From: Mytilus californianus
Lineage: Eukaryota
Length of the DNA stretch: 64,000 nt
Reading direction: 5' to 3'
Assembly (NCBI RefSeq): GCF_021869535.1
Contig: NW_026262581.1
Coordinates: forward strand, 86,800,001 to 86,864,000
Below the pieces are notes generated by a model, which was not told the origin of the DNA, made no database searches, and saw only the letters and a list, made by a program, of their open reading frames with translations. The number at the start of each line of letters is the position of its first letter. Within the stretch, counting starts at the first letter, position 1. The position numbers and the translations under genes are program-made. Of this stretch, positions 9,501 through 37,517 are shown in pieces.

Positions 9501-12500
9501 TGAACCATGAAAAAGAGGTCAAGGTCAGATGACACCCGCCAGTTGGACATGTACACCTTACAATCATTCCATACACCAAATATGGTTGACCTATTGCTTA
9601 ATAGTATTAGAAAAACAGACCAAAACACAAAAAACTTAACATTGAGCAATGAACCATAAAAATGAGGTCAAGGTCAAATAAAACATGACGGACTGACATG
9701 TACACTGTAAAATATTTGCAAACACCAAATATAGTAGACATATTGCTTACAGTATCTGAGATATGAACTTGACCATGAAATCTCAACCTTGTTCACTGAT
9801 CCATGAAATGAGGTTGAGGTCAAGTGAAAACTGTCTGACGGGCATGAGGACCTTGCAAGGTACGCACATACCAAATATAGTCATCCTGTTACTCATAATA
9901 AGGGAGAAATTAAGATTACTAAAAATCTTAACTTTTTTTTCAAGTAGTCACTGAACCATGAAAATGAGGTCAAGGACAATGGACATATGACAGACGGAAA
10001 CTTCATAACATAAGGCATCTATATACAAAGTATGAAGGATCCAGGTCTTCTACCTTCTGAAATATCTAGCTTTTAAGAAGTTTGTTAACGCCACTGTGGC
10101 CGCCACTGCTGGATTACTATCCTTATGTGGAGCTTTCTGCAACAGAAGTCGCAGGCTCAACAAAAATCATTCTTATGATTAAGTTTCTGTGTTGTGAAAT
10201 TTAAAAAAATGAACATCTACAAATAACTTTTTATATATGTTTGAAGGAATAAAATCAGTTTTTATGTTTTTGTCTAAATTGATGCTTATGCAACTTTAAA
10301 GGGAAACAATTTACATTGTAATTTGTATATAATCAGCAGAATCATTATATGTTCCATCAACTATCAACTTCATCATAATGACATTTTATAAGTCATTGTC
10401 CTAAACATTGTTTCCATGGTTATTAAACTATTATCAGAAAAGAACGCTGAAATTCATTTGTTAGATAAAAAAGTTGAAAACATTTATTTAAAGGGACACA
10501 ATCAAAGTTGTATTCTGCTGATTATGAGTAATTGTTTGTTTACATTTTACCAAAAAATGTTTTACTCCAAGATGGTACTCAGAATAGAATCTTGTACACC
10601 TCCTTGGAAAATACTGTACTGGAATTACTTTTAATCAAAAGTTAATCCATTTAGGTTTAAAAAATCCAGAAAATCAACTTAATTTTTGCACATAGGAGAC
10701 ATTAAAAAATTGACTTTTTCATTAAGTGAAAAAAAAAATATTTGTTTTTCAACTCCATTTTAAGTCAACTTTTAACTCTGCGATGATGACCATATATATT
10801 TTCTTGGCTGTTATACCAAGCTGACATTTCTAGTAACAGGAACTGCTACCCATTTTTTTTTAGTTTGTGTAGTCTTCAAGAACTACATGTATAATATGAA
10901 AGACTACTGCATGGTACCCTATGGAAAATGCATTACCAATAATTTCGCTTTTGTAACCTTATATACAATGTAAATTATTTCCCCTATAATATCAGCAGAT
11001 ATGGTATTGCTGTTTTGTGTGTACTTGTAATTTTGTTATACATTATACTGTTATTATAGAGTTCAGTATTTTTCCTGTACTAATTTCTATTTTACATTGA
11101 ATAATAAAACCTTTGTTATTTCACTAAGGGAGATTAACAAGAGTGCACACGCTGAAATGTCTCGCCTACTATACTGACCATTGATTTTATGTTGATAGTC
11201 CTACATATAAATTTTTACTACAAGTATCACATTAACATTTATGATCCAAGAAAATGAGGTCAAGGTCAGATAAACCAAGCCGTAAATACATGTACACCTT
11301 TAATACAATCCCTCCATTCACAGAATATAGATGACCTATTGCTTATAGTATAAAAGAAACAGACCAAACCATGGAAATTCTATATTGACCAATGAACCAT
11401 GAAAATGAAGTCAAGGTCATTTGAACCCTGCCAGACAGACATGTACACATTAAAATCATTCCAAATATAGTTGACCTATTGCTTAAGGTATCTAAGAAAA
11501 AAATTTAACCAGGAAAACTGAATATTGACCAATCAACCATGAAAATGAGGTGAAGGTCAGATGATAACTACCAGACAGACATATACACCTTACAATCATT
11601 CCATACACCAAATATAGTTGACCTATTGCATTAAAGTGTAAGAAAAACAGTCCAAAACACAAAAACTTAACATAAGCAATGAACCATGAAAATGAGGTCA
11701 AGGTCAAATAAAACCTGCCAGACTGACATGTACATCATTAAATATTTCCATACACCAAATATAGTTGACCTACTGCATACAGTATAAGGAAAACAGACCA
11801 AAACACAAAAACTTAACATTTAGCAATGAACCTTGAAAATGAGGTCAAGTTCATATAAAATATGCCAGACTGACATGTACATCGTAAGATATTTCCATAC
11901 ACCAAATAAAGTTGACCTACTGCATACAGTATTAGAAAAACAGACCAAAACACAAAAACTTAACATTGAGCAATGAACCGTGAAAATGAGGTCAAGGTCA
12001 AATAAAACTTGCCAGACTGACATGAACATCGTAAAATATTTCCATACACCAAATACAGTTGACCTATTGCATACAGTATTAGAAAAACAGACCAAAACAC
12101 AAAAACTAAACTATGACCACTGAACCATGAAAATGAGGTCAAGGTCAGATGGCACCTGCCAGTTGGACATGTACACCTTACTATATATCATTACATACAC
12201 CAAATATAGTAGACCTATTGCTTATAGTATCTCAGATATGGACTTGACCACGAAAACTTAACCTTGTTCACTGATCCATGAAATGAGGTCGAGGTCAAGT
12301 GAAAACTGTCTGACGGGCATGAGGACCTTGCAAGGTACGCACATACCAAATATAGTTATCCTATTACTTATAATAAGAGAGAATTTAACATTCCAAAAAA
12401 TCTGAACTTTTATTTCAAGTAGTCACTGAACCATGAAAATGAGGTCAAGGACATTGGACATGTGACTGACGGAAACTTCGTAACATGAGACATCTATATA

Positions 12501-15500
12501 CAAAGTATGAAGCATCCAGGTCTTCCACCTTCTAAAATATAAAGCTTTTAAGAAGTTAGCTAACGCCGCCGCCGCCGCCGCCGCCGGATCACTATCCCTA
12601 TGTCGAGCTTTCTGCGACAAAAGTCGCAGGCTCGACAAAAAGGAGAGAGTTGAGATTTTGTTTAACCCTGCCACATGTTCATGTGCTTGTTCCAAGTTAG
12701 GACCTCAACATAGGTTGTCTTTTGTTATACCTTAATGTTTTTGCCATTTTGAGAATTGATGGCAGGTCTTTTTTTCTTCTGTTCAATTAATAGATATTCA
12801 CAACCTTCCTAGATTTTGGTGATTAAGGGCTTGACATATTGCATAAACACCTATATGCTGTGGAAGACCATATGATAAATCTATATTTTTGTCTCTTGAT
12901 GTACACATAAAATCCCTCTTTATTCATAATAAATTTATATTATTTTTTTTTTTAATTTATATTAAGAAAATGAACAAGGAGAATATGTGTTCTTACTATA
13001 TATAAATGTCAATTTTTTTTCTTCAAGTTTCATAAAGATATTGATAATTTTTATCTCGAGGACATTTATACCACTTAACAGAACTTGCTTAATTGATTTA
13101 TTGCTTTAAATGTTTCTTTGTGCATATGCATGAAACATAGGGTTAAACATATTTGGCAGATGGATAAGTCACAAGTTTTACAACTTAGTAATGTCTTATT
13201 ACTGCTTTTTGTTTAATTTCATAAACAATTATTGTATCTTTTGCTGTTCCCACAAAATAGTTTTAATAAACTATCTACTCAGAGGCATTATTTTTTATGT
13301 GATATCAAAATGCTAATTTTAAAGTAAATAATCCAAAATCTCAATTGAACTGATTTAAACAAAATAAATATCTACAAGAAATTAAATGCATGTTCTGGTA
13401 TTAGTATGTAGACTTTATAGTTATCGCTTGGCGGCAAAGGGGAAATAACTATATTTTAGAATTTTTTTGTGACCATTGATGGGCAAATTCCGGATGGATA
13501 TGCTTTATAAGCAATAGTAGGTTAATCACTTGTGATCATGCTTTATAATCAATAGTAGGTTAAATCACTTGTGGTCATGCTTTATTAGCAATAGTAGGTT
13601 AATCACTTGTGGTCATGCTTTATAAGCAATAGAGGGTAAATCACTTGTGGTCATACTTTATAAGCAATAGTAGATTAATCACTTGTGGTCATGCTTTATA
13701 AGCAATAGTAGGTTAATCACTTGTGGTCATGCATTATAAACAATAGTAGGTTAATCACTTGTGGTCATGCTTTATAAGCAATAGTAGGTTGATCACTTGT
13801 GGTCATGCTTTATAAGCAATAGTAGGTTAATAACTTGTGGTCATGCTTTATAAGCAATAGTAGATTAATCACTTGTGGTCATGCTTTATAAGCAATAGTA
13901 GGTTAATCACTTGTGGTCATGCATTATAAACAATAGTAGGTTAATAACTTGTGGTCATGCTTTATAAGCAATAGTAGGTTAATCACTTGTGGTCATGCTT
14001 TATAAGCAATAGTAGGTTAATAACTTGTGGTCATGCTTTATAAGCAATAGTAGGTTAATCACTTGTGGTCATGCTTTATAAGCAATAGTAGGTTAATCAC
14101 TTGTGGTCATGCTTTATAAGCAATAGTAGGTTAATCACTTGTGGTCATGCTTTATAAGCAATAGTAGGTTAATCACTTGTGGTCATGCATTATAAACAAT
14201 AGTAGGTTAATAACTTGTGGTCATGCTTTATAAGCAATAGTAGGTTGATCACTTGTGGTCATGCTTTATAAGCAATAGTAGGTTAATAACTTGTGGTCAT
14301 GCTTTATAAGCAATAGTAGGTTAATCACTTGTGGTCATGCTTTATAAGCAATAGTAGGTTAATCACTTGTGGTCATGCTTTATAAGCAATAGTAGGTTAA
14401 TCACTTGTGGTCATGCTTTATAAGCAATAGTAGGTTAATGACTTGTTAGGACTACAGACATAGCATTGTGAAAAGAATTACAAAGTCAATTGATAATGTA
14501 TAAGTATGTATCACCGAGTAATATTTTACCGTTAAAAATCGTCTTTAAGTAAGCAAGTCTTTATCTGTGGCATTCAAAAAATATTCTATTTTGTACATAC
14601 ATGGTAACTTGCTTAAACATAGCTTATGTTGTTAAGAAAAATGGTGCAAAAACTGCACTATTATAGCATGATTAGTATATGATATTCACTAAGAAAATAT
14701 TTCTGTTTCTTCTGTTTAAGACAGTTCAAGTGGTGACCCAAATTATTTGGAAGCTAATATTTCATTTGATTACAATTAAACAAAGGAAATCTAATTTAAT
14801 TCAATTCATATTGCGGACATATAAAGCTGTTTATCCCATTACCAAGACTAAAATAAAATAAAATAAAAATAAGTGATAAGGCTATATATTACATGTAAAT
14901 GACAAAAAAAAAGCTATGCAACAAATGAAAATAAATTTTATTATATGCCACAAGTTGGCCCACAACCTTTGTAACTGATTGTTTCTCATATCATATAGGA
15001 AAATAGTTACCTGGCAAGCTTCTAAATGACCTGCAAATGCTGATCTGTATAATGGAGTTCTTTTGAACTGTCCCTGTGTGTTTGGGTTAGCTCCCCTATC
15101 AAGTAGTAATTTAATAGTGTCTGCATTACCACCATCTAAAACAAAGTCATTGATTTCAATATAATTCATTGATTATTCAATCTCTCTGCAAAAATTTTGA
15201 TCATGGTTTGAGTAAATATTTATGTTAGTGCATCATATCTTAAAATACCAGCCTGCCCAAGAAAAGGTTTATAATCTAATAATAATTTCATATGTAAATT
15301 TAGCTTATGATAAAAAAATTGATTAGTTTTGTGTGTTAAGGGTTTACCGCTGTTACAGGGGATCTCTATATAATTTTTTATGTGTTCTATATTGCTGAAT
15401 TTATCTTATTCTTTTTTAATCATGCAGTAACAACAATTAATATTCTCAACTAAGAATGAGATAATTTTGACTTTTTCAGAAGTTAGACAGTTAAAGGAAG

Positions 15501-18500
15501 CTTTTTTGATAAAGTAGATAACAAAAAAATATTCCATAATTATCTTGAAAATAATTTTTCATTAGAAACTGATAACATCTTATGTACATTTGTACGTAAA
15601 CTCTTACTTACTATGTAACCTATTATGTGGTAACACAAATTTTCATAATTTTCTATATTACAAAAGATTATTTTCAAAAATACTATAAAACAATAAATAT
15701 AGGTAAGCTTTAAAAAAAATAGATAAGATTTTATCAATTTTTAAAAATTAACAAATTTTGGGACTGCTAAAATGGAGATAAAAAGAAATTACTTGCTGCC
15801 TCTGATATAGGTGTATTTTCATTAGCATCTTCACATTCCACCATAGCCAACAAATGTCTGTCTCGTAAGTTTTTACCTATCACATCATTTCCTATGTTAT
15901 TCTTATCATCCAATTCCTTTACCTGTAAAGTTAAAACGGAAGTCAATGTCATGCATTCAAAATATGACCTGACTATAGTATAAATTTGGTCAAAATACAA
16001 TATGAATTGCATGTGTGAGAATGCTAAAACATCAATTTTCAAATGATTTATGATTCCAAGGGGAATAAATCCCATAGAAAAAACTGATTGTCAATGGTTT
16101 TCAAACTCAAAAGATATATTGTTGATATCATCTTTTAAATTTTTTTTATCAAAATCTATCACAAATTACAAGGGTGAGAGGTATTGCAGTAAGTGGAATA
16201 TATACATCAACAACACAGCAACACAATGACAAAAATAACCAAAAGATTCCTAGTGCAGTTGTCCCTATCTATAAACTGCAACACAATGACAAAAATAATC
16301 AAAAGACATCTAGTGCAGTTGTCCCTACCTATAAACTACAACACAATGACAAAAATAACCAAAAGACATCTAGTGCAGTTGTCCCTATCTATAAACTGCA
16401 ACACAATGACAAAAATAATCAAAAGACATCTTGTGCAGTTGTCCCTACCTATAAACTACAACACAATGACAAAAATAACCAAAAGACATCTAGTGCAGTT
16501 GTCCCTATCTATAAACTGCAACACAATGACAAAAATAATCAAAAGACATCTAGTGCAGTTGTCCCTACCTATAAACTACAACACAATGACAAAAATAACC
16601 AAAAGACATCTAGTGCAGTTGTCCCTATCTATAAACTGCAACACAATGACAAAAATAACCAAAAGACATCTAGTGCAGTTGTCCCTATCTATACACTACA
16701 ACACAATGACAAAAATAACCAAAAGACATCTAGTGCAGTTGTCCCTATCTATAAACTGCAACACAATGCCAAAAATAACCAAAAGACATCTAATGCAAAT
16801 GCCCCTATCTATACACTACAACACAATGACAAAAATAACCCCCAAAAGACATCTAGTGCAGTTGTCCCTATCTATAAACTGCAACACAATGACAAAAATA
16901 ACCAAAAGACATCTATTGCAGTTGTCCCTATCTATAAACTGCAACACAATGACAAAAATAGCCAAAAGACATCTAGTAAAGTTGTCCCTATCTATAAACT
17001 GCAACACAATGACAAAAATAACCAAAAGACATCTAGTGCAGTTGTCCCTATCTATAAACTGCAACACAATGACAAAAATAGCCAAAAGACATCTAGTAAA
17101 GTTGTCCCTATCTATAAACTGCAACACAATGACAAAAATAGCCAAAAGACATCTAGTGCAGTTGTCCCTATCTATACACTACAACACAATGACAAAAATA
17201 ACCAAAAGACATCTAATGCAAATGCCCCTATCTATACACTACAACACAATGACAAAAATAACCCCCAAAAGACATCTAGTGCAGTTGTCCCTATCTATAA
17301 ACTGCAACACAATGACAAAAATAACCAAAAGACATCTAGTGCAGTTGTCCCTATCTATAAACTGCAACACAATGACAAAAAATAGCCAAAAGACATCTAG
17401 TGCAGTTGTCCCTATCTATAAACTGCAACACAATGACAAAAATAACCAAAAGACATCTAATGCAAATGCCCCTATCTATACACTACAACACAATGACAAA
17501 AATAGCCAAAAGACATCTAGTGCAGTTGTCCCTATCTATAAACTGCAACACAATGACAAAAATAGCCAAAAGACATCTAGTGCAGTTGTCCCTATCTATA
17601 AACTGCAACACAATGACAAAAATAACCAAAAGACATCTAATGCAAATGCCCCTATCTATACACTACAACACAATGACAAAAATAGCCAAAAGACATCTAG
17701 TGCAGTTGTCCCTATCTATAAACTGCAACACAATGACAAAAATAACCAAAAGACATCTTATGCAAATGCCCCTATCTATACACTACAACACAATGAAAAA
17801 AATAATCAAAAGACATCTAGTGCAGTTGTCCCTATCTATAAACTGCAACACAATGACAAAATAACCAAAAGACACCTAGTGCAGTTGTCCCTATCCATAA
17901 ACTGCAACACAATGACAAAAATAACCAAAAGACATCTAATGCAGTTGTCCCTATCTATAAACTGCAACACAATGACAAAAATAACCAAAAGACATCTAGT
18001 GCAGTTGCCCTTATCTATAAACTTTCAAATTCCAATTTAAATAGTTTGTATTACACAATATCTTTCATAAATTGGCCGAAACGTACTTCTTTAAGTATTT
18101 GTAAAATTTCTTCATTATCTCCATCAAAAGCTGCTTCCAACATTCTTTTCTTCCGTTTTATTTCTTCTGCCCTTCTCCTTCTTTCTCCTTCTTCTTTCTT
18201 TCTATCTTTCTCTGCTTGTTCTTGTTCCATCTGTACCAGTTTCAGAAATGCCTGAAAACAAAATTTGTAAATTATAAAGACATGTTTGTTATTATGCATT
18301 AAATGCTAAGACTCCAAATTTATCTGCTGCAGTCCTTCTGCGCCCAATGTATTTTTGAGATATTCCATTTGTGCCAAATTTTATTTTTGAAATGTATCAA
18401 TTGTGACATAATTTAGAATTCATTTTACGCAAATTACCAACATGTATGAATTAAGACCATTTTTGAAATGTATCAATTGTGACATAATTTAGAATTCATT

Positions 18501-23007: not shown

Positions 23008-23077
23008 ATGACAGCACATATCACAGAACGATTGAATCAAATACACAAACTTTGTGATAAGGCATTGATATCAAATG
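23008..23077 (+). CDS. RIMOC1: RIMOC1 exon 1
   Basis: ATG ACA GCA CAT...; G|gtaagt donor, phase 1. Confidence 0.8.
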
Positions 23078-26000
23078 GTAAGTTATCAGTTCTTGGACAA
23101 GTACTTGTTACAAATGGATAAGTTTTGTGATACATCTAATTTCTAAACCTCAATCTCAGTTCTCCCTTATATATAATGACAGCCCCTTTCTTTAGGTATA
23201 ACATACCCTAAGGTGAGGAACAATCCCTTTAATGAATAAAAATATTGAAAACAAATATAATTATGTCTATGACTTTTTGCGGTAAAGAACATTCTTAAAA
23301 TATTTGACACTGGAAATTAAGCAAATAACAATCCATCGATCATTTCTCAAAATTGATATATTTTTTTTTTCAAAAGGCAACAGGGGTTTGAGGACATTAC
23401 GACCCTGACCCACCCTCCTTATTTAAATACCCCAAATGTGTATTTTTTCAATATGTTATTTGTACCATATGTATACCATTATGCTATAATATATGATATT
23501 ATACATGTTATATATTTATTCACTAATTATATAATTTTTTTCTTAGCATGCATGTGCAACTCTACTATAGATAGATACATGTATATCAATTCTTTACCTA
23601 AATATTTTTTAAAGGGATTTTTTTCAACAAAAAGACAGGCTCTCTGAAAATAAAAAAATTCACCCCTGTACCCCAAAAAAGGTTTTGGGCATTATCATCT
23701 ATGTACATATTTGGAGTATTTAATTACTAATTGACAGGTTAATTAATTATCTCCCTTGTCTCAATATCCCAGATCAAATTATATCACAATAAATAGGCTT
23801 CAGACCACAATTAATTCCCCTTGTTCGTGGTCTAGGAATAGAGTTCCAAAGTATTATATGGGGTATTTCTTCAAGAGTTTTCTTGCTACAATTTCCTTTG
23901 AAAAGTTGTCTATTTGAGTGGTCCTATAAGATGCATATATATTGAAATAAATAAAACATGTGGGAAAAATTTATTGTTGAAAGTGAAAGTAGTGATTTGG
24001 CCAAAGTAAAAGTATTCAAATCCTACCATTGACATGCTTTCAGGGCTCTCAAAAGAGAAAGCAGAGATAGATTGTGCTGGGACAAGCATATTTTATTAGA
24101 ATGATAATGGTCTATAAGCAGTAACATTTATTTCATGTTTGAACCCTTTTTAATTTTTTAATCTTATTTGACTTTTACAAAAACAATGCTTTGTTAACCA
24201 ATGGTAAAAATAATTATGGTCTGAGGCCTAGCATGTGACAAGGCATTATCTCCCTTGTAAACTTGTATAAACTCCATCTTCATTTACACCTAGAATAATC
24301 AACCATGGCAAAACGAGATAACTGTTTGCGTGGTAATAAACATCTAATAATTAATCAATCGTCTATCATGATGAATTCTAATTGGTTGTAAATAAAATTT
24401 TGCAGATGATAAAGTGTTGAAGCAACTGAAGGACAAATGTTGCTGTTATATTGATGTTTGTAAAAAATCACCAAGTGAAGAGAGTTTGGTAGAGCTTCTG
24501 AAACAATATGCTCAGGTAAAACTAGAATTAGAGAAAACTATAACATATTTGACATATTTATGTAGGTAGTTGATATAGAGATCATTATAGCTATACTTAA
24601 ATATTGTTATGTACATATATATTTGATAGATACAGTTTCTAGACATAATTGTTCTGTGTTTTTACTAGATAGTAACTTTCAAGCATGTGTGTACAGCTAT
24701 TTATGAACACAAGAGTACAATGACATTATCTTTTGTGTAGGGATGGCTAGTTGTTGTACAAAGTTTTTAAATTTGACCTTTAAAACCTTCTCTGTTTGCA
24801 TTCAAAATAGCTGAAATTGTTTTAAACAAATATCTGGACATTCTAAGGATTGCAATGCAAGTCCTAAAGAATAATATTTTTTTCAGTGTGTACATTTTAG
24901 ATATTAAATTATAGTAAGTGAATTAGATATTAAACTAGAGGATAGTGATGGAAGCCACCACAAAGGGCTATGGTGCATGAAGATAAGTAAATTTTGATTC
25001 AAATTTAAAAGTAATAAGAGTTTTTCCATTAAACATAGCTTATCCCTCATGGAAGGCAGGCATTATATTCAGGCACAACTTGTATTAGTGATATTGAGTG
25101 AACTGAAATGTGGGTGGGAAATACATGTTAAATGATGACCGTATTTATAGTAAAGGGGGTAACATTAAGTGTTTCCATTGATACTAATGATGAAATAATT
25201 AAGTCAAGTGGTAATACAGTAATGTCCAATTGTGTATTGTTTAAATTTATAGGAACAGACCACGACCAAAGAATGTCATGTGAACACTTTAACATCTTCC
25301 TCATTATCAGTAGTTTGATGTCTTGTCTTTGAATATTGTTAAAATGATTAATCATAAGAAATTGCTTATTATGTTATTAGCACAATTTTCCTGGTTTTCT
25401 GTCTAAAGTCTGTATAAAGTGTAAAAAGTAAAACAAACATCAAGGAATATTACTAACAAAACTATGGCTTTTTGATGTTTATAACAATAAACCAATGATA
25501 ATGATATGTTATTTATTACAATAAACCAATGATAATGATATTTTATTTATTACAATAAACCAATGATAATGATATGTTATTTATTACAATAAACCAATGA
25601 TAATGATATGTTATTTATTACAATAAACCATTGATAATGATATGTTATTTATTACAATAAACCAATGATAATGATATGTTATTTATTACAATAAACCATT
25701 GATAATGATATGTTATTTATTACAATAAACCAATGATAATGATATGTTATTTATTACAATAAACCAATGATAATGATCTGTTATTTATTACAATAAACCA
25801 ATTTAATGATCTGTTATTTATAACAATAAACCAATGATAATTAACTGTAATTTAATACAATAAACCAATGACAATGATCTGTTATTTATTACAATAAACC
25901 ATTGACAATGATCTGTTATTTATAACAATAAACCATTGATAATGATCTGTTATTTATTACAATAAACCAATGATAATGAACTGTTATTTATTACAATAAA

Positions 26001-29000
26001 CCAATGACAATGATCTGTTATTTATTACAATAAACCAATGACAATGATCTGTTATTTATAAAAATAAACCATTGATAATTATCTGTTATTTATAACAATA
26101 AACCAATGACAATGATCTGTTATTTATTACAATAAACCAGTGACAACGATCTTATTTATAACAATAAACCATTGATAACGATCTGTTATTTATTACAATA
26201 AACCAAATTGAATGATAATGATGTGTTATTTATAACAATTAACCAATGATAATGATGTGTTATTTATTACAATAAACCATTGATAATAATCTGTTATTTA
26301 TTACAATAAACCAATGATAATGATCTGTTATTTATTACAATAATCCAATGATACTGATCTGTTATTTATTACTATAAACCATTGATAATGATCTGTTATT
26401 TATAACAATAAACCAATGACAATGATGTGTTATTTATAACAATAAACCAACGACAGTGATCTGTTTTTTATTTCAATAAACCAATGATAATGATGTTATT
26501 TTTAACAATAAACCAATGATAATGATATGTTATTTATTACAGATAGTTCTAGATTATACTTACATTGATGAAACCAAACTTGTAGATGAACTATTTCCAC
26601 AAGACACTTGTAAAGAAAGAATACACACAATATTTGGTAATAAGATTTCTTTTAAGGTGCCATTCTTTTATTAGTATACTAGACTTTTTTAGTTAGCAAA
26701 ATGTTAAGCCGTATGTTTTTTTAAACATTTATACTTGTTTATTATGAAGGAAATAAAATGTTTCCCCAGAATAAGTTTGTGTTTACATGGCCATTTAGAT
26801 TTTAGCAAATTGAACTAGCTCATAGAATAATTACAATAGCTATTGTTTTCTGTCAAGTTCATTCAATTGAAACTTTATATTTCTATCTGAAAAACCAATC
26901 ATTTATTGATTAATTTAGCTGTACAAAAATTTAAAAAAGATTAATGATATTCAGCAATCCCAGTACATACCTTTGGGAATTAAAAAAAAATCTAACAGAA
27001 AAAAGAATTTCTTTCAAGACTTAGGCGTATTGTTTCCGTTGTCAATGGCATTGTCACCAATGTTTTAGTTTGTGGTTAGGTCAGTTTAAGGGAAACCACT
27101 AGTGGTAGGTCAATGATATTTGGTATGCAGTTGTATTAGCATTAGCACATCTCAATTCTATCTAATAAATGATGTATGATGCCCTCCTTTGAATAGGATG
27201 TGGTGATTCTTGATTAACATTAGTGCTTTATATATATAAAATTATCCAATGTAGGTTACATAGTATTGACTAGTTCAGGTCGGAATTTCTATATTCTAAA
27301 TAATCTAATATAATTGGTTTTTTTTGGGTTATTTTTTAGTTTGGATAGATACAATAGAAGAACTTGTAAAGAAATGTCTTCCAGAAACATCAGTAAGTGT
27401 TAAAAAACAGATAAGATTTGTAGTTATATTATTACACTTTGCAATTGCAAGCATGCCTGTACCAAGTCAGGAATATGACAGTTGTTTTCCATTCGTTTGA
27501 TGTGTTTGAGCTTTTGATTTTGCCATTTGATAAGGGACTTTCCATTTTGAATTTTCCTTGGACATGTTGGAGTTCAGTATTTTTGTTATTTGACTTTTTA
27601 TTCATAATAAATTAAAATTTGCAACTGTTTTTACCCAAAAGAGACTACCTTATTGATTTTTTATTTGGGTTTAATCCTATTCTCTAAACACTCACACCCT
27701 TCCATTGTGGTCAATTTGTATATAGTGGAGTAAACCAAAGTCAGTAGTAATTAATTACAGACTTTCCATTAACAAAAGACAAATTTCAGCACAAATCTAT
27801 AGGTGAATATAAAAATAAGAAGACATGGTATGATTGCCAATGAGACAACTCTCCACCAGAGACCAAATGACTTATAAGTAACCAACTATAGGCCTTCAAT
27901 AATGAGCAAAACCCATATCGCACAGCAAGCTATAAAAGGCCCCAAAATGACAAATGTAAAACAATTCAAGCGAGAAAACTAACAGCCTGGTGTAAAAGCA
28001 TTGACAGAAGCACATTTTATATAGAGTACAAGAGCGCTTTATACTTAAAATGTTCACAGGATCAACGCTTTCACCCCAATAAAATTATAAAAAGAAGCAT
28101 TCAATTCTTACAATTAAATTATATACTACTATTATGAAATTTATAGTTATATCAAGCCTTCGTTTGTTTTCCTATGCATTGTTGTGACATTGTCATGAAT
28201 GTTGCATTGTTTTTAGCCAATCAAAAGTACTGATTTTTTTTTAAAATGTAATGTATTTATAATGAAGTTAGAGTTTATCTCTTAATTATTGTTTAAGCAT
28301 GATAACTAGTTGTATATATAAAACCCTGAAATTATTTTATTTAGTTTGAAACTTTCTATATATAGATGGTAGACTGTTTAGGACATGAATTAGTGGAATG
28401 TATTAATTGGAGGAAGGGTGCTTTGTTATATATGTTATGCAGTACAATTAAAGGAGATAGTAACAGAGAAGACCAAATAAATTATGAATTTTATATGGTA
28501 AAAATCTATTGTGATGGTATTATTTTTGGAAAATCCAACAGGATAAGTGTTGCATTAATTTAATTTTTTTTTAAAAAACCAATTGTATTACAAGTATGCA
28601 GTTTGTCTTCAAATGGCATTATTAATCTTGCATTTCTGATAAATGCACACAATTATTTTCATCATCAGAATGAATTATATTACTTTCAAATCAATTGTTG
28701 AATAATCGAATATCCTATTATAGATTATTAGAGAAACAAGGAAAACTATTAATCATTTTTGGAAAATTGAGTTTGTTCATTGAAACCACATAAAATTTAT
28801 GAAACTATAGTAGATATTACATTTTTTTTTGCATTTTGACCAATATATGGTCTATATTTTAAAAGTTATTTTTCATAATTGAATACCTTCATATTAAAGT
28901 CATATGAAACGAGTTTCTTGTAATTATAATGTTATCAAAATTATTGAACCAATGCAAGCGTATACTAAACCAGTCAGGATTCTACTTCATCAAAATTATC

Positions 29001-32000
29001 TCCCCATTACGCCACCAATTTTTTATAATCGTAAAAATGGAAGCCATTGTAGTGATGACGCACCGTCAGTTTAGCTCTTGAAACCCAATCAGTTTATCCA
29101 CATAGCATCATTACGATCATTATATGCCAGTTGTATCTTAAAAGACAAATGTATCTACTTTCTATTGAGCATCATTTAATGTACTTTTATGCATATGGTC
29201 AATTTAAAACTATTGTATGATCGGTTGTCAGGGGGAATTTTCGAGTGTTCAAAAATATTTTAAAAAGTTCTAATTAAATATTTCGTGGAAGGGCAGACTA
29301 AAAAAATTCAGAGGTTGAGGACTAATTACCCTAGATAACATACACAAAAATGATTTTTTTTTTTAAGTTATTCATTTTTAAGATCCACTTGTATAGTCTT
29401 GTCAAGTATTTTTTATAGAAATTTATAATTCGAACACACCTACTCTGTTGTTATGACTCATTAGAAAGATATTTCACTTGACCCATATATTTCATTTCTT
29501 AGTACTGTAAGTGTTTAATGTTATTATACCAACATATAAAAATAATAGAATCTGAAGCGAGATGATGTATCAAATATTTTTTTTTTTATGTTTTTAAGAC
29601 ATAGTCAACTTAAACACACCTGAACATAAAAAGGAGTACTCAACTTTCTCTTTTGATGAAATTATTGTCCATTTTTGGGATTTTTTTCTTAAAAAAACTG
29701 TTGCCGGGGGCAGAGATGTAAATTAATGCTTTAAAAAGATCAATCTATTATCTTTCTTTGTAATTTTTTTCGGTGGAATTTATGCTTATGCACAAAAAAG
29801 ATCCACATGTATTTGCACATACCCCAATAGACTGTTTTGTGAAAATGTGTCTATAATTTAAAAGTTTACAAATATCTCAACGCTTTATACCATAATTTAA
29901 GTAAAAACATATATATAAGATGCATAAAGTCCTAAATTATGCACATTCATTAAATTTTTAAAGCCCATAGAAACAGATGTAAACAATTCAAATTTACCAA
30001 CCTGTCCTTTTTTACCTTCTCTAACAAAGAGTTCCATTTCTTTTGTTTTATTTCAACTGGGTTTCCGACTTAAACTAATTCCTGTATGCACGTTTTTATA
30101 CGACCGCAAAAAAATTTTGGGGTCGTATATTGCTATCACGTCTCATGTCTCTTAAAAATTGTACCACATTTTACAAAAAGAAAATGTCTTCAAATGTTAT
30201 TTTTTTTTGAGGGGGAGGGTCAATTTTTTTTCACTCAAAAATTAAAGAAATGGTCAATTTTCCAAAGAAAAATTGGGGTTCACAATTTATTTTGCTAATT
30301 CTTTGTATATTGTCTGTAAACAGATTTACTAAGTATTGCGGAACAGCACAGTGTATTGCACAACAGCAAGAAATCTTCAATTGAATATAAATTCAAATCA
30401 TATAACCAATTTCAAGTTCTTTGACTACATTTATTCTGTGTCAGAAACCTATAATGTGTCAAATATTTAATTACAATCCAAATTCAGACCTGTATCAAGC
30501 TTGAATATTGTGTCCATTTTTGCCCCAATTGTCAGGGTTGGACATCTGTGGTCGTATCCAGCTGTGCTCCGTGAAGCAGTTTATTTACATTTATTATGAA
30601 TCTATAACATATTATCGAAAATAATATTTCATTCAGTGATTGTTGATCACAAGCTAATCAACTTTCAAGTTTGTTGCCAAAGTTTACCAAATCAAGACAT
30701 TGATAAACATTCAAATGTGTTCTAGTGGAGCACGTGAAAAATAAGTGAATCTATAGACTTTCAGCATAACATTTAATATAAATTTAAGACTTGGTTTGAT
30801 TGCCAATGAGACATCTATTCATCAAAGACCAAAGGACAAGGATGTAAACATTGACAGGTCACCATACAGCCTCTATCAATGAGCAAAATTCATGTGTTAT
30901 AGTAAGCTATGAAAGGATCCAGATAACAAAATATGAAACAATTGTAAAGAGAAAACTAACAGCTAAATTTAAGCATGTGGTATTTTTACGACTCCAATCT
31001 TAATTGACTAGGATTGCAAGTTTTCCTGTCAAAGGTCAGTGGTTCTATCCAGGCCCTACAACTTCCTCCACCAATAAAAAGTTGCAGCCATGATACAGCC
31101 AATAGGGCTGAAAGTAGTGTTAAACACCATTCTAATATGAAGTCCTTCTTTTACTTTGGAAACAAAGCCATGTTCTAATTTGAATAAAACATGGGCTGCA
31201 CGTGATTGCAACATCAGTTGTATTAAACAACGCCGGAGATAAAAATGGACAATTGTGTTGGTGTTGTGAAATTAAATAAAATCATTCTAAAAGTAAGTTT
31301 ACATGTATGTTCATTTTCTATCGTGAAACGGTTAATTTTCTACATCATTTTGGCTTCATCAAATCAAAATGGCTGCCTTTCGAACTTGTGTTATAGGTCC
31401 TCTTCAGAGGATAAAAGCTCTTAATTTTCCTATTAGAATCGAAATAATTCTATCATGCCATGCTCTTTGCTACATGGGTAGGCATTATATTTGTCAACAT
31501 TTTACACCTTGCTAATGCTCAGTATAAAGATATTGACAAATATTATGCCTACCCATGTTAAAATGAGCATAGAGCATGGCATGAAAGAATTATTTCTTAA
31601 ACAATCAATCAATCTTCCTTAGAAATGTAACATTATCAGCCTCAATGGAAAGATTCTTTTATTTATATATACATGTATAAATAATTAAAATGAAAAGTTT
31701 AAAATGAATTAAGTGATAATTGTGTTTCAGAATGTAAAGCAGGGTATAGAGTATTTACAGCAGATGTTATCAGGTCGTTTCAATACTTCTGAATGGGAAG
31801 GTGATCAGGATGCTGTTAACTTAGCAAGCATGGGTAAGTTATTCACTCTTTACACAATATCATTTGGGAGCTGTCTGGAAATTATTTTTGGAGTAAATGC
31901 TTCCTAATTATTTAAGACTTTGGAGAGACTTTATGATAAAGGACTGCAATGAATTTGTTGATTTAGTGCCTTTAATTTCCTATTATTTCATTGGATGTTG

Positions 32001-35000
32001 TCTAATGTTCTTTCACTTAACAATAGTTCTTAGTTTAAATCTTTTCATTTGAAAACCCTGTATTTTAATTACCACCTATAAATAGTATGCTTCATTTTGA
32101 CTGATATCCACTATCAGTTTGTTTACATTTTCAACCAACCACCAGAACAAGCTACCACAGAATCATGAGAACATGCAAAGTCCATTTTTAATGTTACCAG
32201 ATATCAGTATAAGTCATTGTCTATTTAAAACCCTGACACCTATTACAAATTGGATACACATTTTTGACCATATTAAGTTTCTGTCCTCAAGCAAACAAAA
32301 ATAATCAAATAATAATAATTAAAGTTAATGAGTAATTCATTATGAAGTCCAAATTATAAAAGCTTAACAAATAGCAAGAATACATTTGACTTTATATGTT
32401 CATTTAAATAAAATGATAATCAACAGCTGTTTCTTTATGGTCACACCTGCAAAAATCAGGTCAGTTAACAGATATGTGCTTATTGAAGCAGATGGCCCGA
32501 CTCTAAAATTTGTCGTAAAAAATTACCTGGTGATAAACTAATTAATTTGCAGGTCAAATAGATACAGTATTTTGTAACAGAAATGGCCAAAATCACAGGG
32601 AATTTAAATCATGTAAAGATGGAAATGGGTCATTTAACTTTAGCCACCCTTACATAAACTGCTGTACTGAGTTATAAAGAGAAACAAGGTATCAGTAATG
32701 CATCATTATTTACAATTTTTTCTATCTTTACAGGTATATACAGTGACACACTAAGTACGATGTATGTTGGTGAAATGTGCTATTGGTTATGTAACAAACC
32801 TTTCTATCTTTACAGGTATATACAGTGACACATACTAAGTATTATGTATGCTGGTGAAATATGCTATTGGTTATGTAACAAACCTTTCTATCTTTACAGG
32901 TATATACTGTGACACACACTAAGAACGATGTATGTTGGTGAAATGTGCTATTGTTTTGTAACAAACCTTTCTATCTTTACAGGTATATACAGTGACACAC
33001 ACTAAGTACGATGTATGCTGGTGAAATGTGCTATTGGTTATGTAACAAACCTTTCTATCTTTACAGGTATATACAGTGACACACACTTACTAAGTATGAT
33101 GTATGCTGGTGAAATGTGTTATTGGTTATGTAACAAACCTTTCTATCTTTACAGGTATATACAGTGACACACACTTACTAAGTATTATGTATGCTGGTGA
33201 AATGTGCTATTGGTTATGTAACAAACCTTTCTATCTTTACAGGTATATACAGTGACACACACTTACTAAGTATGATGTATGCTGGTGAAATGTGCTATTG
33301 GTTATGTAACAAACCTTTCTATCTTTACAGGTATATACAGTGACACACACTTACTAAATATGATGTATGCTGGTGAAATGTGCTATTGGTTATGTAACAA
33401 ACCTTTCTATCTTTACAGGTATATACAGTGACACACACTTACTAAGTATGATGTATGCTGGTGAAATATGCTATTGGTTATGTAACAAACCTTTCTATCT
33501 TTACAGGTATATACAGTGACACACTAAGTACGATGTATGTTGGTGAAATGTGCTATTGGTTATGTAACAAACCTTTTTATCTTTACAGGTATATACAGTG
33601 ACACATACTAAGTATTATGTATGCTGGTGAAATATGCTATTGGTTATGTAACAAACCTTTCTATCTTTACAGGTATATACTGTGACACACACTAAGAACG
33701 ATGTATGTTGGTGAAATGTGCTATTGTTTTGTAACAAACCTTTCTATCTTTACAGGTATATACAGTGACACACACTAAGTACGATGTATGCTGGTGAAAT
33801 GTGCTATTGGTTATGTAACAAACCTTTCTATCTTTACAGGTATATACAGTGACACACACTTACTAAGTATGATGTATGCTGGTGAAATGTGTTATTGGTT
33901 ATGTAACAAACCTTTCTATCTTTACAGGTATATACAGTGACACACACTTACTAAGTATTATGTATGCTGGTGAAATGTGCTATTGGTTATGTAACAAACC
34001 TTTCTATCTTTACAGGTATATACAGTGACACACACTTACTAAGTATGATGTATGCTGGTGAAATGTGCTATTGGTTATGTAACAAACCTTTCTATCTTTA
34101 CAGGTATATACAGTGACACACACTTACTAAATATGATGTATGCTGGTGAAATGTGCTATTGGTTATGTAACAAACCTTTCTATCTTTACAGGTATATACA
34201 GTGACACACACTTACTAAGTATGATGTATGCTGGTGAAATATGCTATTGGTTATGTAACAAACCTTTCTATCTTTACAGGTATATACTGTGACACACACT
34301 AAGTATTATGTATGCTGGTGAAATGTGCTATTGATTTTGTAACAAACCTTTCTATCTTTACAGGTATATACAGTGACACACACTAAGTACGATGTATGTT
34401 GGTGAAATATGCTATTGGTTATGTAACAAACCTTTCTATCTTTACAGGTATATACAGTGACACATACTAAGTACTGTGTATGTTGGTGAAATTGGCTATT
34501 GGGTATGTAACAAACCTTTCTATCTTTACAGGTATATACAGTGACACACACTAAGTATTATGTATGCTGGTGAAATGTGCTATTGGTTATGTAACAAACC
34601 TTTCTATCTTTACAGGTATATACAGTGACACACACTTACTAAGTATGATGTATGCTGGTGAAATGTGCTATTGGTTATGTAACAAACCTTTCTATCTTTA
34701 CAGGTATATACAGTGACACACACTTACTAAGTATGATGTATGCTGGTGAAATGTGTTATTGGTTATGTAACAAACCTTTCTATCTTTACAGGTATATACA
34801 GTGACACACACTTACTAAATATGATGTATGCTGGTGAAATGTGCTATTGGTTATGTAACAAACCTTTCTATCTTTACAGGTATATACAGTGACACACACT
34901 TACTAAGTATGATGTATGCTGGTGAAATATGCTATTGGTTATGTAACAAACCTATCTATCTTTACAGGTATATACAGTGACACACACTTATTAAGTACGA

Positions 35001-37157
35001 TGTATGCTGGTGAAATATGCTATTGGTTATGTAACAAACCTTTCTATCTTTACAGGTATATACAGTGACACACACTAAGTATTATGTATGCTGGTGAAAT
35101 GTGCTATTGGTTATGTAACAAACCTTTCTATCTTTACAGGTATATACAGTGACACACACTTACTAAGTATGATGTATGCTGGTGAAATGTGTTATTGGTT
35201 ATGTAACAAACCTTTCTATCTTTACAGGTATATACAGTGACACACACTTACTAAATATGATGTATGCTGGTGAAATGTGCTATTGGTTATGTAACAAACC
35301 TTTCTATCTTTACAGGTATATACAGTGACACACACTTATTAAGTATGATGTATGCTGGTGAAATATGCTATTGGTTATGTAACAAACCTATCTATCTTTA
35401 CAGGTATATACAGTGACACACACTTATTAAGTACGATGTATGCTGGTGAAATATGCTATTGGTTATGTAACAAACCTTTCTATCTTTACAGGTATATACA
35501 GTGACACACACTAAGTATTATGTATGCTGGTGAAATGTGCTATTGGTTATGTAACAAACCTTTCTATCTTTACAGGTATATACTGTGACACACACTAAGT
35601 ATGATGTATGTTGGTGAAATGTGCCATTAGTTTTGTAACAAACCTTTCTATCTTTACAGGTATATACAGTGACACACACTTACTAAGTATGATGTATGCT
35701 GGTGAAATATGCTATTGGTTATGTAACAAACCTATCTATCTTTACAGGTATATACAGTGACACACACTTATTAAGTACGATGTATGCTGGTGAAATATGC
35801 TATTGGTTATGTAACAAACCTTTCTATCTTTACAGGTATATACAGTGACACACACTAAGTATTATGTATGCTGGTGAAATGTGCTATTGGTTATGTAACA
35901 AACCTTTCTATCTTTACAGGTATATACAGTGACACACACTTACTGAGTATAATGTATGTTGGTGAAATGTGCTTTTGGTTTTGTAACAAACCTTCCTATC
36001 TTTACAGGTATATACTGTGACACACACTAAGTATGTTGTATGCTGGTGAAATGTGCTATTGATTTTGTAACAAACCTTTCTATCTTTACAGGTATATACA
36101 GTGACACACACTAAGAATGATGTATGTTGGTGAAATGTGCTATTAGTTTTGTAACAAACCTCTCTATCTTTACAGGTATATACAGTGACACACACTTACT
36201 AAGTATGATGTATGTTGGTGAAATGTGCTATTAGTTTTGTAACAAACCTTTCTATCTTTACAGGTATATACAGTGACACACACTTACTAAGTATGATGTA
36301 TGTTGGTGAAATGTGCTATTGTTTTGTAACAAACCTTTCTATCTTTACAGGTATATACAGTGACACACTAAGTACTATGTATGTTGGTGAAATGTGCTAT
36401 TGATTTTGTAACAAACCTTCCTATCTTTACAGGTATATACAGTGACACACACTAAGTATTATGTATGCTGGTGAAATGTGCTATTGATTTTGTAACAAAC
36501 CTTCCTATCTTTACAGGTATATACAGTGACACACACTAAGTATGATGTATGTTGGTGAAATGTGCTATTGATTTTGTAACAAACCTTTCTATCTTTACAG
36601 GTATATACAGTGACACACTAAGTACTATGTATGTTGGTGAAATATGCTATTGGTTATGTAACAAACCTTTCTATCTTTACAGGTATATACAGTGACACAC
36701 ACTAAGTATTATGTATGCTGGTGAAATGTGCTATTGGTTATGTAACAAACCTTTCTATCTTTACAGGTATATACAGTGACACACACTTACTAAGTATGAT
36801 GTATGCTAGTGAAATTGGCTATTGGTTATGTAACAAACCTTTCTATCTTTACAGGTATATACAGTGACACACACTTACTAAGTATGATGTATGCTGGTGA
36901 AATGGGCTATTGGTTTTGTAACAAACCTTTCTATCTTTACAGGTATATACAGTGACACACACTTACTAAGTATGATGTATGCTGGTGAAATGTGTTATTG
37001 GTTTTGTAACAAACCAGAACAAAGTACTTCTGACTTTAATCCAAAGGTTATAGGACAAGACCTACTATCAAAATATATTGCATGTGCAAAGTCACCAGTT
37101 ATGTATGGATGGTCAACAGACAAAGCTGAAGAATTTCTTAAAGTTATGTCAACATGA
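23008..37157 (+). CDS. RIMOC1: RAB7A-interacting MON1-CCZ1 complex subunit 1 (C5orf51/UPF0600 orthologue); 7 exons, about 258 aa
   Basis: Exons 23008-23077, 24406-24515, 26543-26636, 27340-27392, 28366-28497, 31731-31833 and 36943-37157 join in frame (777 nt) with GT-AG borders. Peptides YAQIVLDYTYIDETKLVDELFP, LGHELVECINWRKGALLYM and GIYSDTHLLSMMYAGEMCYW match recalled C5orf51 motifs (ILDMTYFEENKLVDEDFP, LGDELLECLSWRRGALLYM, GIFSDIHLLAMMYSGEMCYW). Confidence 0.9.
24406..24515 (+). CDS. RIMOC1: RIMOC1 exon 2
   Basis: ttttgcag acceptor, CAG|gtaaaa donor; SLVELLKQYAQ. Confidence 0.87.
25484..26542. repeat. 34-bp minisatellite (about 31 copies) ending in the RIMOC1 exon 3 acceptor
   Basis: Unit aataaaccaatgataatgat(a/c)tgttatttattac; the last unit ends ttattacAG. 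Confidence 0.93.
26543..26636 (+). CDS. RIMOC1: RIMOC1 exon 3
   Basis: ttattacag acceptor (last unit of a 34-bp array), G|gtaata donor; IVLDYTYIDETKLVDELFP. Confidence 0.9.
27340..27392 (+). CDS. RIMOC1: RIMOC1 exon 4
   Basis: ttttttag acceptor (in-frame alternative AG 9 nt downstream), TCA|gtaagt donor. Confidence 0.8.
28366..28497 (+). CDS. RIMOC1: RIMOC1 exon 5
   Basis: tatatag acceptor, ATG|gtaaaa donor; LGHELVECINWRKGALLYMLC. Confidence 0.9.
30092..30585. mobile_element. Internally deleted HINE-like element
   Basis: tttttatacgaccgc...gtcgtata start and gtcgtatccagctg...gaagcagtttatt end, shared with 39322-42218. Confidence 0.7.
31217..31600. mobile_element. Hairpin-ended non-autonomous element (copy of 735-2312)
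   Basis: Long imperfect inverted arms at about 31442-31497 and 31533-31596. Confidence 0.65.
31731..31833 (+). CDS. RIMOC1: RIMOC1 exon 6
   Basis: gtttcag acceptor, G|gtaagt donor; GIEYLQQML. Confidence 0.9.
32719..37015 (+). repeat. 82-88-bp satellite (about 50 copies) built from the RIMOC1 last-exon acceptor plus the first 73 coding nt
   Basis: Unit tttctatctttacag|gtatatacagtgacacacacttactaagtatgatgtatgctggtgaaatgtgctattggttatgtaacaaacc; the final unit runs into unique coding sequence. Confidence 0.95.
36943..37157 (+). CDS. RIMOC1: RIMOC1 terminal coding exon (intact copy at the end of the satellite)
   Basis: ctttacag acceptor; GIYSDTHLLSMMYAGEMCYWFCNKPEQ...GQDLLSKYIACAKSP...GWSTDKAEEFLKVMST*; AATAAA near 37373 and 37383. 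Confidence 0.85.
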
Positions 37158-37517
37158 GTTGAATACATATTTATAAGTTGATTATTGTTTTTCCAAAATG
37201 ATATCAGATACATGTAGGCAAGGCAAGGAGAATATATTGGTTCAATTATAGAATTGATGCAATGATGACAAGAGACAGAGATGAAACGTTGTCATTCCAA
37301 TAGCTTTTCAAACTTAAAAGCCACTTTTATGTTAAAAAGCTACTTTTATTGAAAATTAAGACGAAGTAGCAAAAATAAAAGTAATAAATGTATATGTGAG
37401 TTACATGTACACAAGAACTCTAGATGTATTTTGTTCTTTTTAGCCAGATAATTAATTTGGAGTAGTATGAAGGGTAGGCAAGCAGTTGAAATTAAAAACA
37501 AAATCAATTTCCTATCA

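Follow-up and report, generated by a model that had tools for sequence, protein, structure and literature searches.

We describe a large tandem array which spans the last intron-exon junction of the gene RIMOC1 in the mussel Mytilus californianus. The window studied is a whole stretch of 64,000 nucleotides (nt), positions 86,800,001–86,864,000 of contig NW_026262581.1 (assembly GCF_021869535.1); its source record is chromosome JAKFGE010000001.1 of assembly GCA_021869535.1. Positions are given in the window unless another sequence is named. RIMOC1 has seven coding exons (Table 1), and the protein encoded at the locus is identical to the RefSeq entry 'RAB7A-interacting MON1-CCZ1 complex subunit 1-like'. 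The 258-residue model and its metazoan orthologues are collinear. In the Pfam family RIMC1 (PF17716) the peptide of exon 7 matches positions 167–254 of 256 (E 2e-13) and that of exon 5 positions 85–135; two exons score 50.5 and 50.4 bits against this family, for which the cut-off is 25. All six natural donors of the gene have the form GTAA.., and splice-site strength is judged here solely against the sites of RIMOC1 itself. In human cells RIMOC1 (C5orf51) is a component of MON1-CCZ1 which controls RAB7A in mitophagy (PMC9037554).

Tandem Repeats Finder calls a single array at the end of intron 6, in positions 32719–37015, with a period of 88, 50.0 copies and 93% matches. Its unit contains the last 15 nt of intron 6 followed by the first 73 nt of terminal exon 7; the exon part codes for GIYSDTHLLSMMYAGEMCYW, which is the best conserved motif of the RIMC1 family across metazoa. 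The 16-mer which covers the splice junction, CTTTACAGGTATATAC (CTTTACAG/GTATATAC, the slash marks the junction), is found exactly 50 times in the array, and AG is intact in all 50 units, from the first one at 32732–32733 to the last one at 36941–36942. The unit sequence has no further occurrence elsewhere in the window. Most units are 88 nt (26 units) or 84 nt (17 units) long; the others have 82 nt (four), 83 nt (two) or 87 nt (one). They form 30 distinct variants, arranged in the order ABCDEFGHI JBCDEFGHI KLMN GEH OPN EH QPN R OPN..., in which the triplet OPN recurs. A block of nine units with 773 bp is found twice, with 99–100% identity: it points to a recent duplication of several units within the array. 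We will call decoys the 49 units which precede the last one. They are in effect intronic sequence, a part of intron 6.

A preliminary description of this DNA, made from its letters alone, had assigned the gene to RIMOC1 and recognized about 50 units of 82–88 bp, each with 15 nt from the intron end and about 73 nt from the exon start. It had also noted that copy 1 carries a 6-nt deletion, so that its reading frame would give GIYSDTLSTMYVGEMCYWLCNKPFYLYRYIQ followed by a stop, and that only the last copy reaches the intact C-terminus. It was right in every structural point. The gene is identified by its Pfam RIMC1 matches and by the full-length orthologous protein of 258 residues, the unit by repeat finding and by single-copy orthologues, and copy 1 by unit typing and translation; copy 50 alone encodes the 71-residue end. 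The poly(A) site had been placed near 37373. The main site is probably further downstream, given that transcript contigs pass the AATAAA pair (about 37374–37388) and reach about 37460–37490; a contig from Mytilus coruscus, a second species with an array, has a terminal exon of at least 702 nt.

Table 1. Position of RIMOC1, its terminal array and other repeats in the window
Feature	Position	Strand	Evidence and remarks
RIMOC1 coding span, 7 coding exons, 258 aa, RefSeq isoform X1	23008–37157	+	Exact spliced model (P0145); Pfam RIMC1 matches; tblastn of orthologues
Exon 6	31731–31833	+	Ends in phase 1, donor TGG/GTAAGT; spliced model; RNA depth about 9–15 in run X21, contigs in X3, X14 and X15
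Unique part of intron 6	31834–32718	+	Zero RNA depth in all four runs; aligns to orthologous introns
Two copies of 773-bp nine-unit higher-order block	32712–34257	+	32712–33011 against 33485–33784, 99%; string of unit types
49 decoy units, 82–88 nt, which repeat the pyrimidine tract, the AG and the first 67–73 nt of exon 7	32719–36927	+	Repeat finding, unit typing; no unit-to-unit junction reads in RNA run X21
Authentic 3' splice site of unit 50, tttctatctttacAG	36928–36942	+	Spliced model; RNA joins exon 6 here
Terminal exon 7, coding part, GIYSDTH...GWSTDKAEEFLKVMST	36943–37157	+	Stop at 37155–37157; first 73 nt are the repeat template; Pfam, tblastn, spliced model
3' untranslated region, minimum extent	37158–37460	+	Contig X3 to about 37459, X15 to about 37487; M. 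coruscus contigs
Minisatellite, 48 bp x 8.8	6481–6910		Within the span of the neighbouring ankyrin-repeat gene (minus strand, product of 581 aa)
Minisatellite, 38 bp x 10	7138–7512		Within the span of the same gene
Minisatellite, 38 bp x 25	13500–14446		Within the span of the same gene
Minisatellite, 60 bp x 30	16218–18023		Within the span of the same gene

The choice of acceptor was studied with RNA reads placed on exon 6, intron 6 and unit 1 only (31650–32815); they were typed by indels, single-nucleotide differences and loose ends with respect to unit 1. The raw reads, 27 of which were placed, come from about 6% of run X21; this run and the source sample share one organism code. The depth is about 9–15 in exon 6 (about 14.7), zero in the 885 nt of unique intron and 12 in the unit region. 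The unit is thus covered like the exon, with no excess from the 49 collapsed copies, and the columns of the pyrimidine tract have a depth close to zero. Exon 6 is joined to a unit in nine reads, and another three are clipped at the AG; the six extra letters of the 88-nt type are present in each of these 12. Three bases separate unit 50 from unit 1, and they have the unit-50 state in 13/13, 15/15 and 13/13 reads. The end of the unit is reached by 13 reads, and every one of them goes on into the unique exon (AGAACAAAG... or AGAACAAAGTAC...); none of them runs into another pyrimidine tract, and no unit-to-unit junction read is found in this run. Direct counting (0/13) limits decoy use to less than about 21% (95% bound). 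Since no unit-to-unit read is present, a much stricter limit applies to decoy use which retains the downstream array: the decoy fraction multiplied by the mean number of units retained is below about 0.23. A tail AAAGAAAGAGCATCA found in loose ends after short overhangs of exon 6 has no match in the window; we consider it noise from one or two reads.

Assembled RNA contigs give the same picture. In sample X15 a contig goes from exon 6 to a unit of the 88-nt type and then to the unique exon; in X3 exon 6 is also joined to a unit of this type, and the contig has a length which fits a full-length mRNA. Sample X14 has a looped contig of 118 nt with a unit-to-unit junction, at a word depth of 6.1 compared with 9.0 for the exon. 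Divided among up to 49 copies, this depth amounts to 1–2% per copy, as expected of pre-mRNA, and the contig shows that the array is present in a further sample. The preliminary description had proposed that a full-length protein requires the spliceosome to bypass 49 near-identical acceptors; the M. californianus reads and contigs, together with the M. coruscus RNA described below, bear this out. The transcripts also exclude that the locus is a silent duplicate, which had been named as a way in which that proposal might fail.

In other Mytilus species the locus has two different states. M. edulis, M. galloprovincialis and M. trossulus each have one copy at the orthologous locus, 98–99% identical to unit 50 and contiguous with both the unique intron and the unique exon. 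These single-copy orthologues confirm where the unit starts and ends (15 nt in the intron, 73 nt in the exon) and show that the 88-nt type is ancestral. M. coruscus, in an independent assembly (GCA_011752425.2), has instead 53 units at the orthologous site, compared with 50 in M. californianus (one assembly of each species): 49 and three complete units flank a repeat-rich insertion of 2.5 kb, which interrupts unit 50. The two arrays have 12 derived unit states in common, including the 4-nt deletion which defines the 84-nt type, so that the array predates the separation of M. californianus and M. coruscus. Both of them also have variants private to the species, and a M. californianus unit has a best match of 0.989 inside its own species and of 0.961 in the other one; a local turnover has probably taken place since the split. 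The functional outcome is the same. Fourteen RNA contigs of M. coruscus (SRR13891805, SRR13891808, SRR13891810 and others) encode the full protein of 258 residues, and they are 100% identical to their own locus over 702 nt from the last unit onward.

The authentic exon start (36943–37015) is polymorphic in the reads at two sites, a synonymous TGT/TGC and TTT/TTA, which gives F or L in CYW(F/L)C. Both sites also vary among the units, which suggests that array and exon exchange variants. The insertion in M. coruscus (positions 25414–27889 of sequence L002) has internal repeats of 147 bp with the motif gaccttgacctcattttcatgg and looks like a mobile element; the same family of 147–149-bp repeats is found in the M. 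californianus window at 9073–9822 and 11241–12308.

M. coruscus has a peculiarity on the other side of the intron. In positions 19604–19904 of L002, which correspond to about 31750–31840 in the window, the 3' part of exon 6 and its GTAAGT donor are tandemly duplicated (88 bp x 3.4). The period is that of the acceptor array, and the breakpoints lie at a microhomology TATTTACA. The mRNA carries an ATAG variant which corresponds to the first donor copy; in the assembly this copy aligns poorly to the mRNA (79%). With the first donor and the last acceptor present in the mRNA, the sites used in this species are those which adjoin the real exon bodies. The deposited gene model CAC5367263.1 (170 aa) is truncated at the donor duplication.

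From these data we interpret the array as a minisatellite of the type called 'mirage' in amphioxus, which covers a splice junction and is apparently silent in function, with decoy use as rare noise at most; we give this interpretation a probability of about 0.8. Tandem amplification of an 88-bp piece of the boundary between intron 6 and exon 7 would have taken place in an ancestor which M. californianus and M. coruscus share. Later turnover by unequal exchange may have produced the 30 variants, the 84- and 82-nt deletion types and the duplicated nine-unit block. In the mRNA sampled exon 6 is joined to the last AG, the only one which precedes the rest of the exon, and this gives the normal protein of 258 residues.

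Upstream of the working acceptor of unit 50 there is no longer the original intron but unit 49, a copy of exon sequence, and the branch point must be located there: GTAAC at –21 and TACTAAG at –61 are candidates, with no intervening AG. All units from 2 to 50 share this upstream context, with the same branch-point candidates, tract, AG and first 73 nt of exon. Up to position +73 nothing makes units 2–49 less competent than unit 50, so that whatever tells them apart must be located further downstream. Unit 50 alone precedes the exon body and the 3'-end/poly(A) signals; a decoy would meet another tract and AG after 73 nt. Terminal-exon definition, suggested by the preliminary description, would be a reasonable explanation of the bypass in a nearest-neighbour form. 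We rejected simple distance to the poly(A) site as the selector, with unit 49 just 88 nt further away than unit 50. Re-splicing from the AG/GT which each decoy join would recreate may additionally remove errors.

Several points weigh against a silent array. The mechanism of acceptor selection is inferred. The informative reads are just 12–13, from about 6% of one run whose tissue and stage are unstated, and the animals sampled for RNA may have an array of another length. Decoy-spliced mRNAs could be produced and then degraded. The public annotation is a further point: RefSeq/Gnomon lists at least 22 isoforms (X1–X22) of the gene, and 20 of them end at decoy acceptors. We predict that products of exon 6 joined to a decoy end after seven residues for the 84- and 83-nt units (19 decoys), after 31–33 residues for the 88- and 82-nt units (27 decoys) and after 17, 19 and 46 residues for units 43, 41 and 42. 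The C-termini of the RefSeq isoforms are exactly these: isoforms X2–X5 have 220 residues, X7 has 206 and X8 has 204; isoforms X9–X19 (194 residues) end in GIYSDTH, one for each of the 11 such units, and isoforms X20–X22 end in GIYSDTY, one for each of the three such units. Thus all fourteen 84-nt units with these two ends are modelled; the coordinates of decoy isoforms map to units 11, 13, 14, 20, 21, 22, 28, 33, 37, 40, 44, 45 and 47. The coverage of the 84-nt units is complete and they diverge from unit 50 about 20 nt after the join, which suggests some genuine low-level decoy use in deep RNA data. In our opinion the decoy isoforms are rare events or mapping artefacts, either rare real joins or multi-mapped junction reads. 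The truncated products of 194 and 220 residues are found only in RefSeq genome models and in none of the RNA assemblies, a weak negative because short-read assemblers break at repeats. The decoy acceptors are thus already present in the annotation, but have apparently never been discussed. Isoform X6 (214 residues) is of another kind: it skips exon 5 (28366–28497, 132 nt, in frame), a conserved RIMC1 segment. RNA contigs placed on the locus have the length expected with exon 5 included.

The preliminary description also considered, as an alternative to the bypass, that decoys take a substantial share of splicing, so that the allele would be hypomorphic or the length of the array would tune the ratio of full-length to truncated RIMOC1. 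The decoys do look competent on paper (their tract, AG and upstream context are those of the working site), and 20 decoy-ending isoforms have been modelled. However, none of the 12–13 informative reads is at a decoy. A decoy mRNA would carry about 25 units on average and would flood the collapsed unit with reads, but the depth there equals that of the exon and is about zero over the tract. Full-length contigs are found in three other samples of M. californianus and in M. coruscus; these two species have both kept the array, and both make full-length mRNA. No sampled read or transcript uses a decoy; we consider substantial decoy use largely refuted already and highly improbable. A variant of it is that decoys are used often and their products are unstable: a premature stop followed by a 3' untranslated region (UTR) of 0.5–4.6 kb would trigger decay and leave only the last join in steady-state RNA. 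Decoy products should indeed stop after 7–46 codons and have very long 3' UTRs, and the deep data used by RefSeq apparently caught some of them. But decoys 45–49 add just 0.1–0.5 kb of UTR and should be stable; if every site were used equally, more reads should come from them than from unit 50, to which all 13 reads belong. As these decoys are unseen in spite of the little UTR they add, decay alone cannot explain the data. Besides, decay does not classically target mRNAs whose stop is in the last exon, and we find this variant quite improbable. An artefact of assembly, in which a sequence with one or few copies has been over-expanded, should also be considered: tandem arrays are prone to such errors. 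But the M. californianus assembly is based on 45x HiFi reads with an N50 of 14 kb (PMC9710001), which exceeds the 4.3 kb of the array; the independent M. coruscus assembly has its own array at the same site; a unit-to-unit junction contig is present in sample X14; and the 30 variants are arranged in an ordered higher-order structure. An artefact, which had been foreseen as a possible refutation, is very unlikely, to the point of being negligible, and is excluded by the M. coruscus array.

A different possibility is that decoys are used and corrected. Each decoy join would recreate a 5' splice site TGG/GTATAT, from which splicing would go on, step by step, to the last copy; this is a form of error correction rather than a rival anatomy. 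In M. californianus AGGT is intact in 50/50 units and lies in an invariant block of 19 columns (permutation p about 0.009). Each unit has branch-point-like motifs (TACTAAG, GTAAC) and could act as an 'intron' of 84–88 nt. The outcome also fits, with only the last join present in RNA; in addition AGGT tandem repeats are spliced out in UBC and VCX3A (PMC10809524), and ratchet points are known in Drosophila. On the other hand GTATAT is off-consensus, unlike the six GTAA.. donors of the gene. In M. coruscus ten units have GTACAT, AG or GT is lost in 5/49 aligned units and there is no conservation of the block. Non-independence of the units inflates the permutation p, and no intermediates are found in the RNA reads, although they would be short-lived if made. 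We consider this mechanism rather unlikely. The invariant block was also rejected as evidence of selection on AG/GT, as it is unmatched in M. coruscus and its units are not independent. A more general proposal is that mussel spliceosomes follow an active rule which neutralizes splice-junction minisatellites. It might be nearest-neighbour exon definition, in which only the acceptor that abuts the exon body pairs with the 3'-end machinery, or stepwise re-splicing at AG/GT, with leakage mainly from the 84-nt units. Such a rule is speculative and, in our judgement, unlikely; if it exists, the RIMOC1 array would be a natural reporter of 3' splice-site choice with 50 sites.

The interpretation which we favour, a silent splice-junction minisatellite, places the array in a known class. 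In amphioxus, mirages are minisatellites which duplicate splice sites while splicing is undisturbed (PMC3087553, PMC3902484). Ebner et al. described their concerted evolution, from which cluster edges are excluded (PMC3087553), and Pavelitz et al. in 2013 added TnC and PGBD5 as further examples (PMC3902484). The RIMOC1 array is, like them, a head-to-tail minisatellite whose tandem unit spans an exon-intron boundary and carries its splice signal (AG or GT), whose authentic copy lies at the edge beside the exon body and is the one used, in a small RNA sample, and whose mRNA is spliced normally. Concerted evolution and higher-order turnover may also be common to both. The RIMOC1 array differs in being found in Mollusca, a group for which we found no published example of a splice-junction mirage, and in its size: 50 units in 4.3 kb compared with 3–6 units in the globin examples. 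It lies at a terminal-exon acceptor, it is common to two species and thus old, not a private unstable allele, and its decoys have given rise to at least 20 isoform models in public annotation. Regulated alternative 3' splice sites are a different class, in which two or more acceptors have an appreciable use; here there are no decoy joins in 12–13 reads and no array RNA. We searched the literature on duplicated 3' splice sites and competition in cis, with nothing usable found. Multi-stretch protein matches in other species (P0007, P0089, P0109, P0127) were tried as similar arrays and rejected: they are unrelated repetitive proteins.

Mechanistically the closest analogue is found in the human genes UBC and VCX3A. 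Duan et al. in 2024 showed that their tandem AGGT dual-specific repeats are spliced, and argued that expansions are tolerated because they can be removed (PMC10809524). AG/GT juxtaposed at every repeat boundary, as in dual-specific sites, is also found in 50/50 units of M. californianus, and in both cases expansion is tolerated since the extra copies are removable by splicing. In RIMOC1, unlike these genes, the GT is only a putative donor. The units of UBC are coding, in frame (228 nt) and stochastically included, whereas those of RIMOC1 are out of frame (88, 84 and 82 nt), bear stops and show no detectable inclusion. Zero-nucleotide recursive splicing at ratchet points in Ubx, kuz and Bx of Drosophila (bioRxiv 10.1101/006163, PMC8605326) also has a 3' splice site which abuts a regenerated 5' splice site (YnCAG/GT). 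However, ratchet points are single, conserved, located in very long introns and provided with strong GTAAGT-like donors, whereas in RIMOC1 there are 50 sites at a spacing of 88 nt, their GTATAT is weak, and stepwise removal is not seen in RNA. Finally, in the model of Rogers an intron is gained by tandem duplication across an AGGT proto-splice site (discussed in PMC3087553). In both cases a segment with AG/GT is duplicated, the extra copy is spliced out and the mature mRNA is unchanged; unlike in that model no new intron has appeared in RIMOC1, but the existing intron 6 has been lengthened by 4.2 kb.

The array is apparently a very large, evolutionarily retained and silent member of its class. 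It extends mirage minisatellites from amphioxus to molluscs and shows their persistence across a speciation event. It is also a natural experiment: 49 acceptors which have the branch region, tract, AG and first 73 exon bases of the working site are ignored, so that the choice of 3' splice site must depend here on downstream context. Minigenes of this locus could test exon definition against re-splicing directly. For annotation the array is a trap, with at least 20 truncated RefSeq isoforms of RIMOC1 derived from it; similar arrays in other mussel genes would inflate isoform counts and confuse analyses of differential splicing. It is also a standing mutational hazard for a conserved motif, as conversion of the last unit by an 84-nt unit would create a frameshift allele.

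RIMOC1 has a second minisatellite in intron 2, with 31 copies of 34 bp in positions 25478–26541. It ends 1–2 nt before the acceptor AG of exon 3, which starts at 26543, and its unit is the last 34 nt of the intron (pyrimidine tract and branch region). The copies read ACAA and the authentic site ACAG: they are therefore not decoy acceptors. This repeat has about eight copies in M. coruscus and one in M. edulis and M. galloprovincialis; M. trossulus has only a diverged single stretch. The other four minisatellites in Table 1 are found in the neighbouring ankyrin-repeat gene, and the 60-bp array is responsible for the strong strand skew at 16–18 kb of the window.

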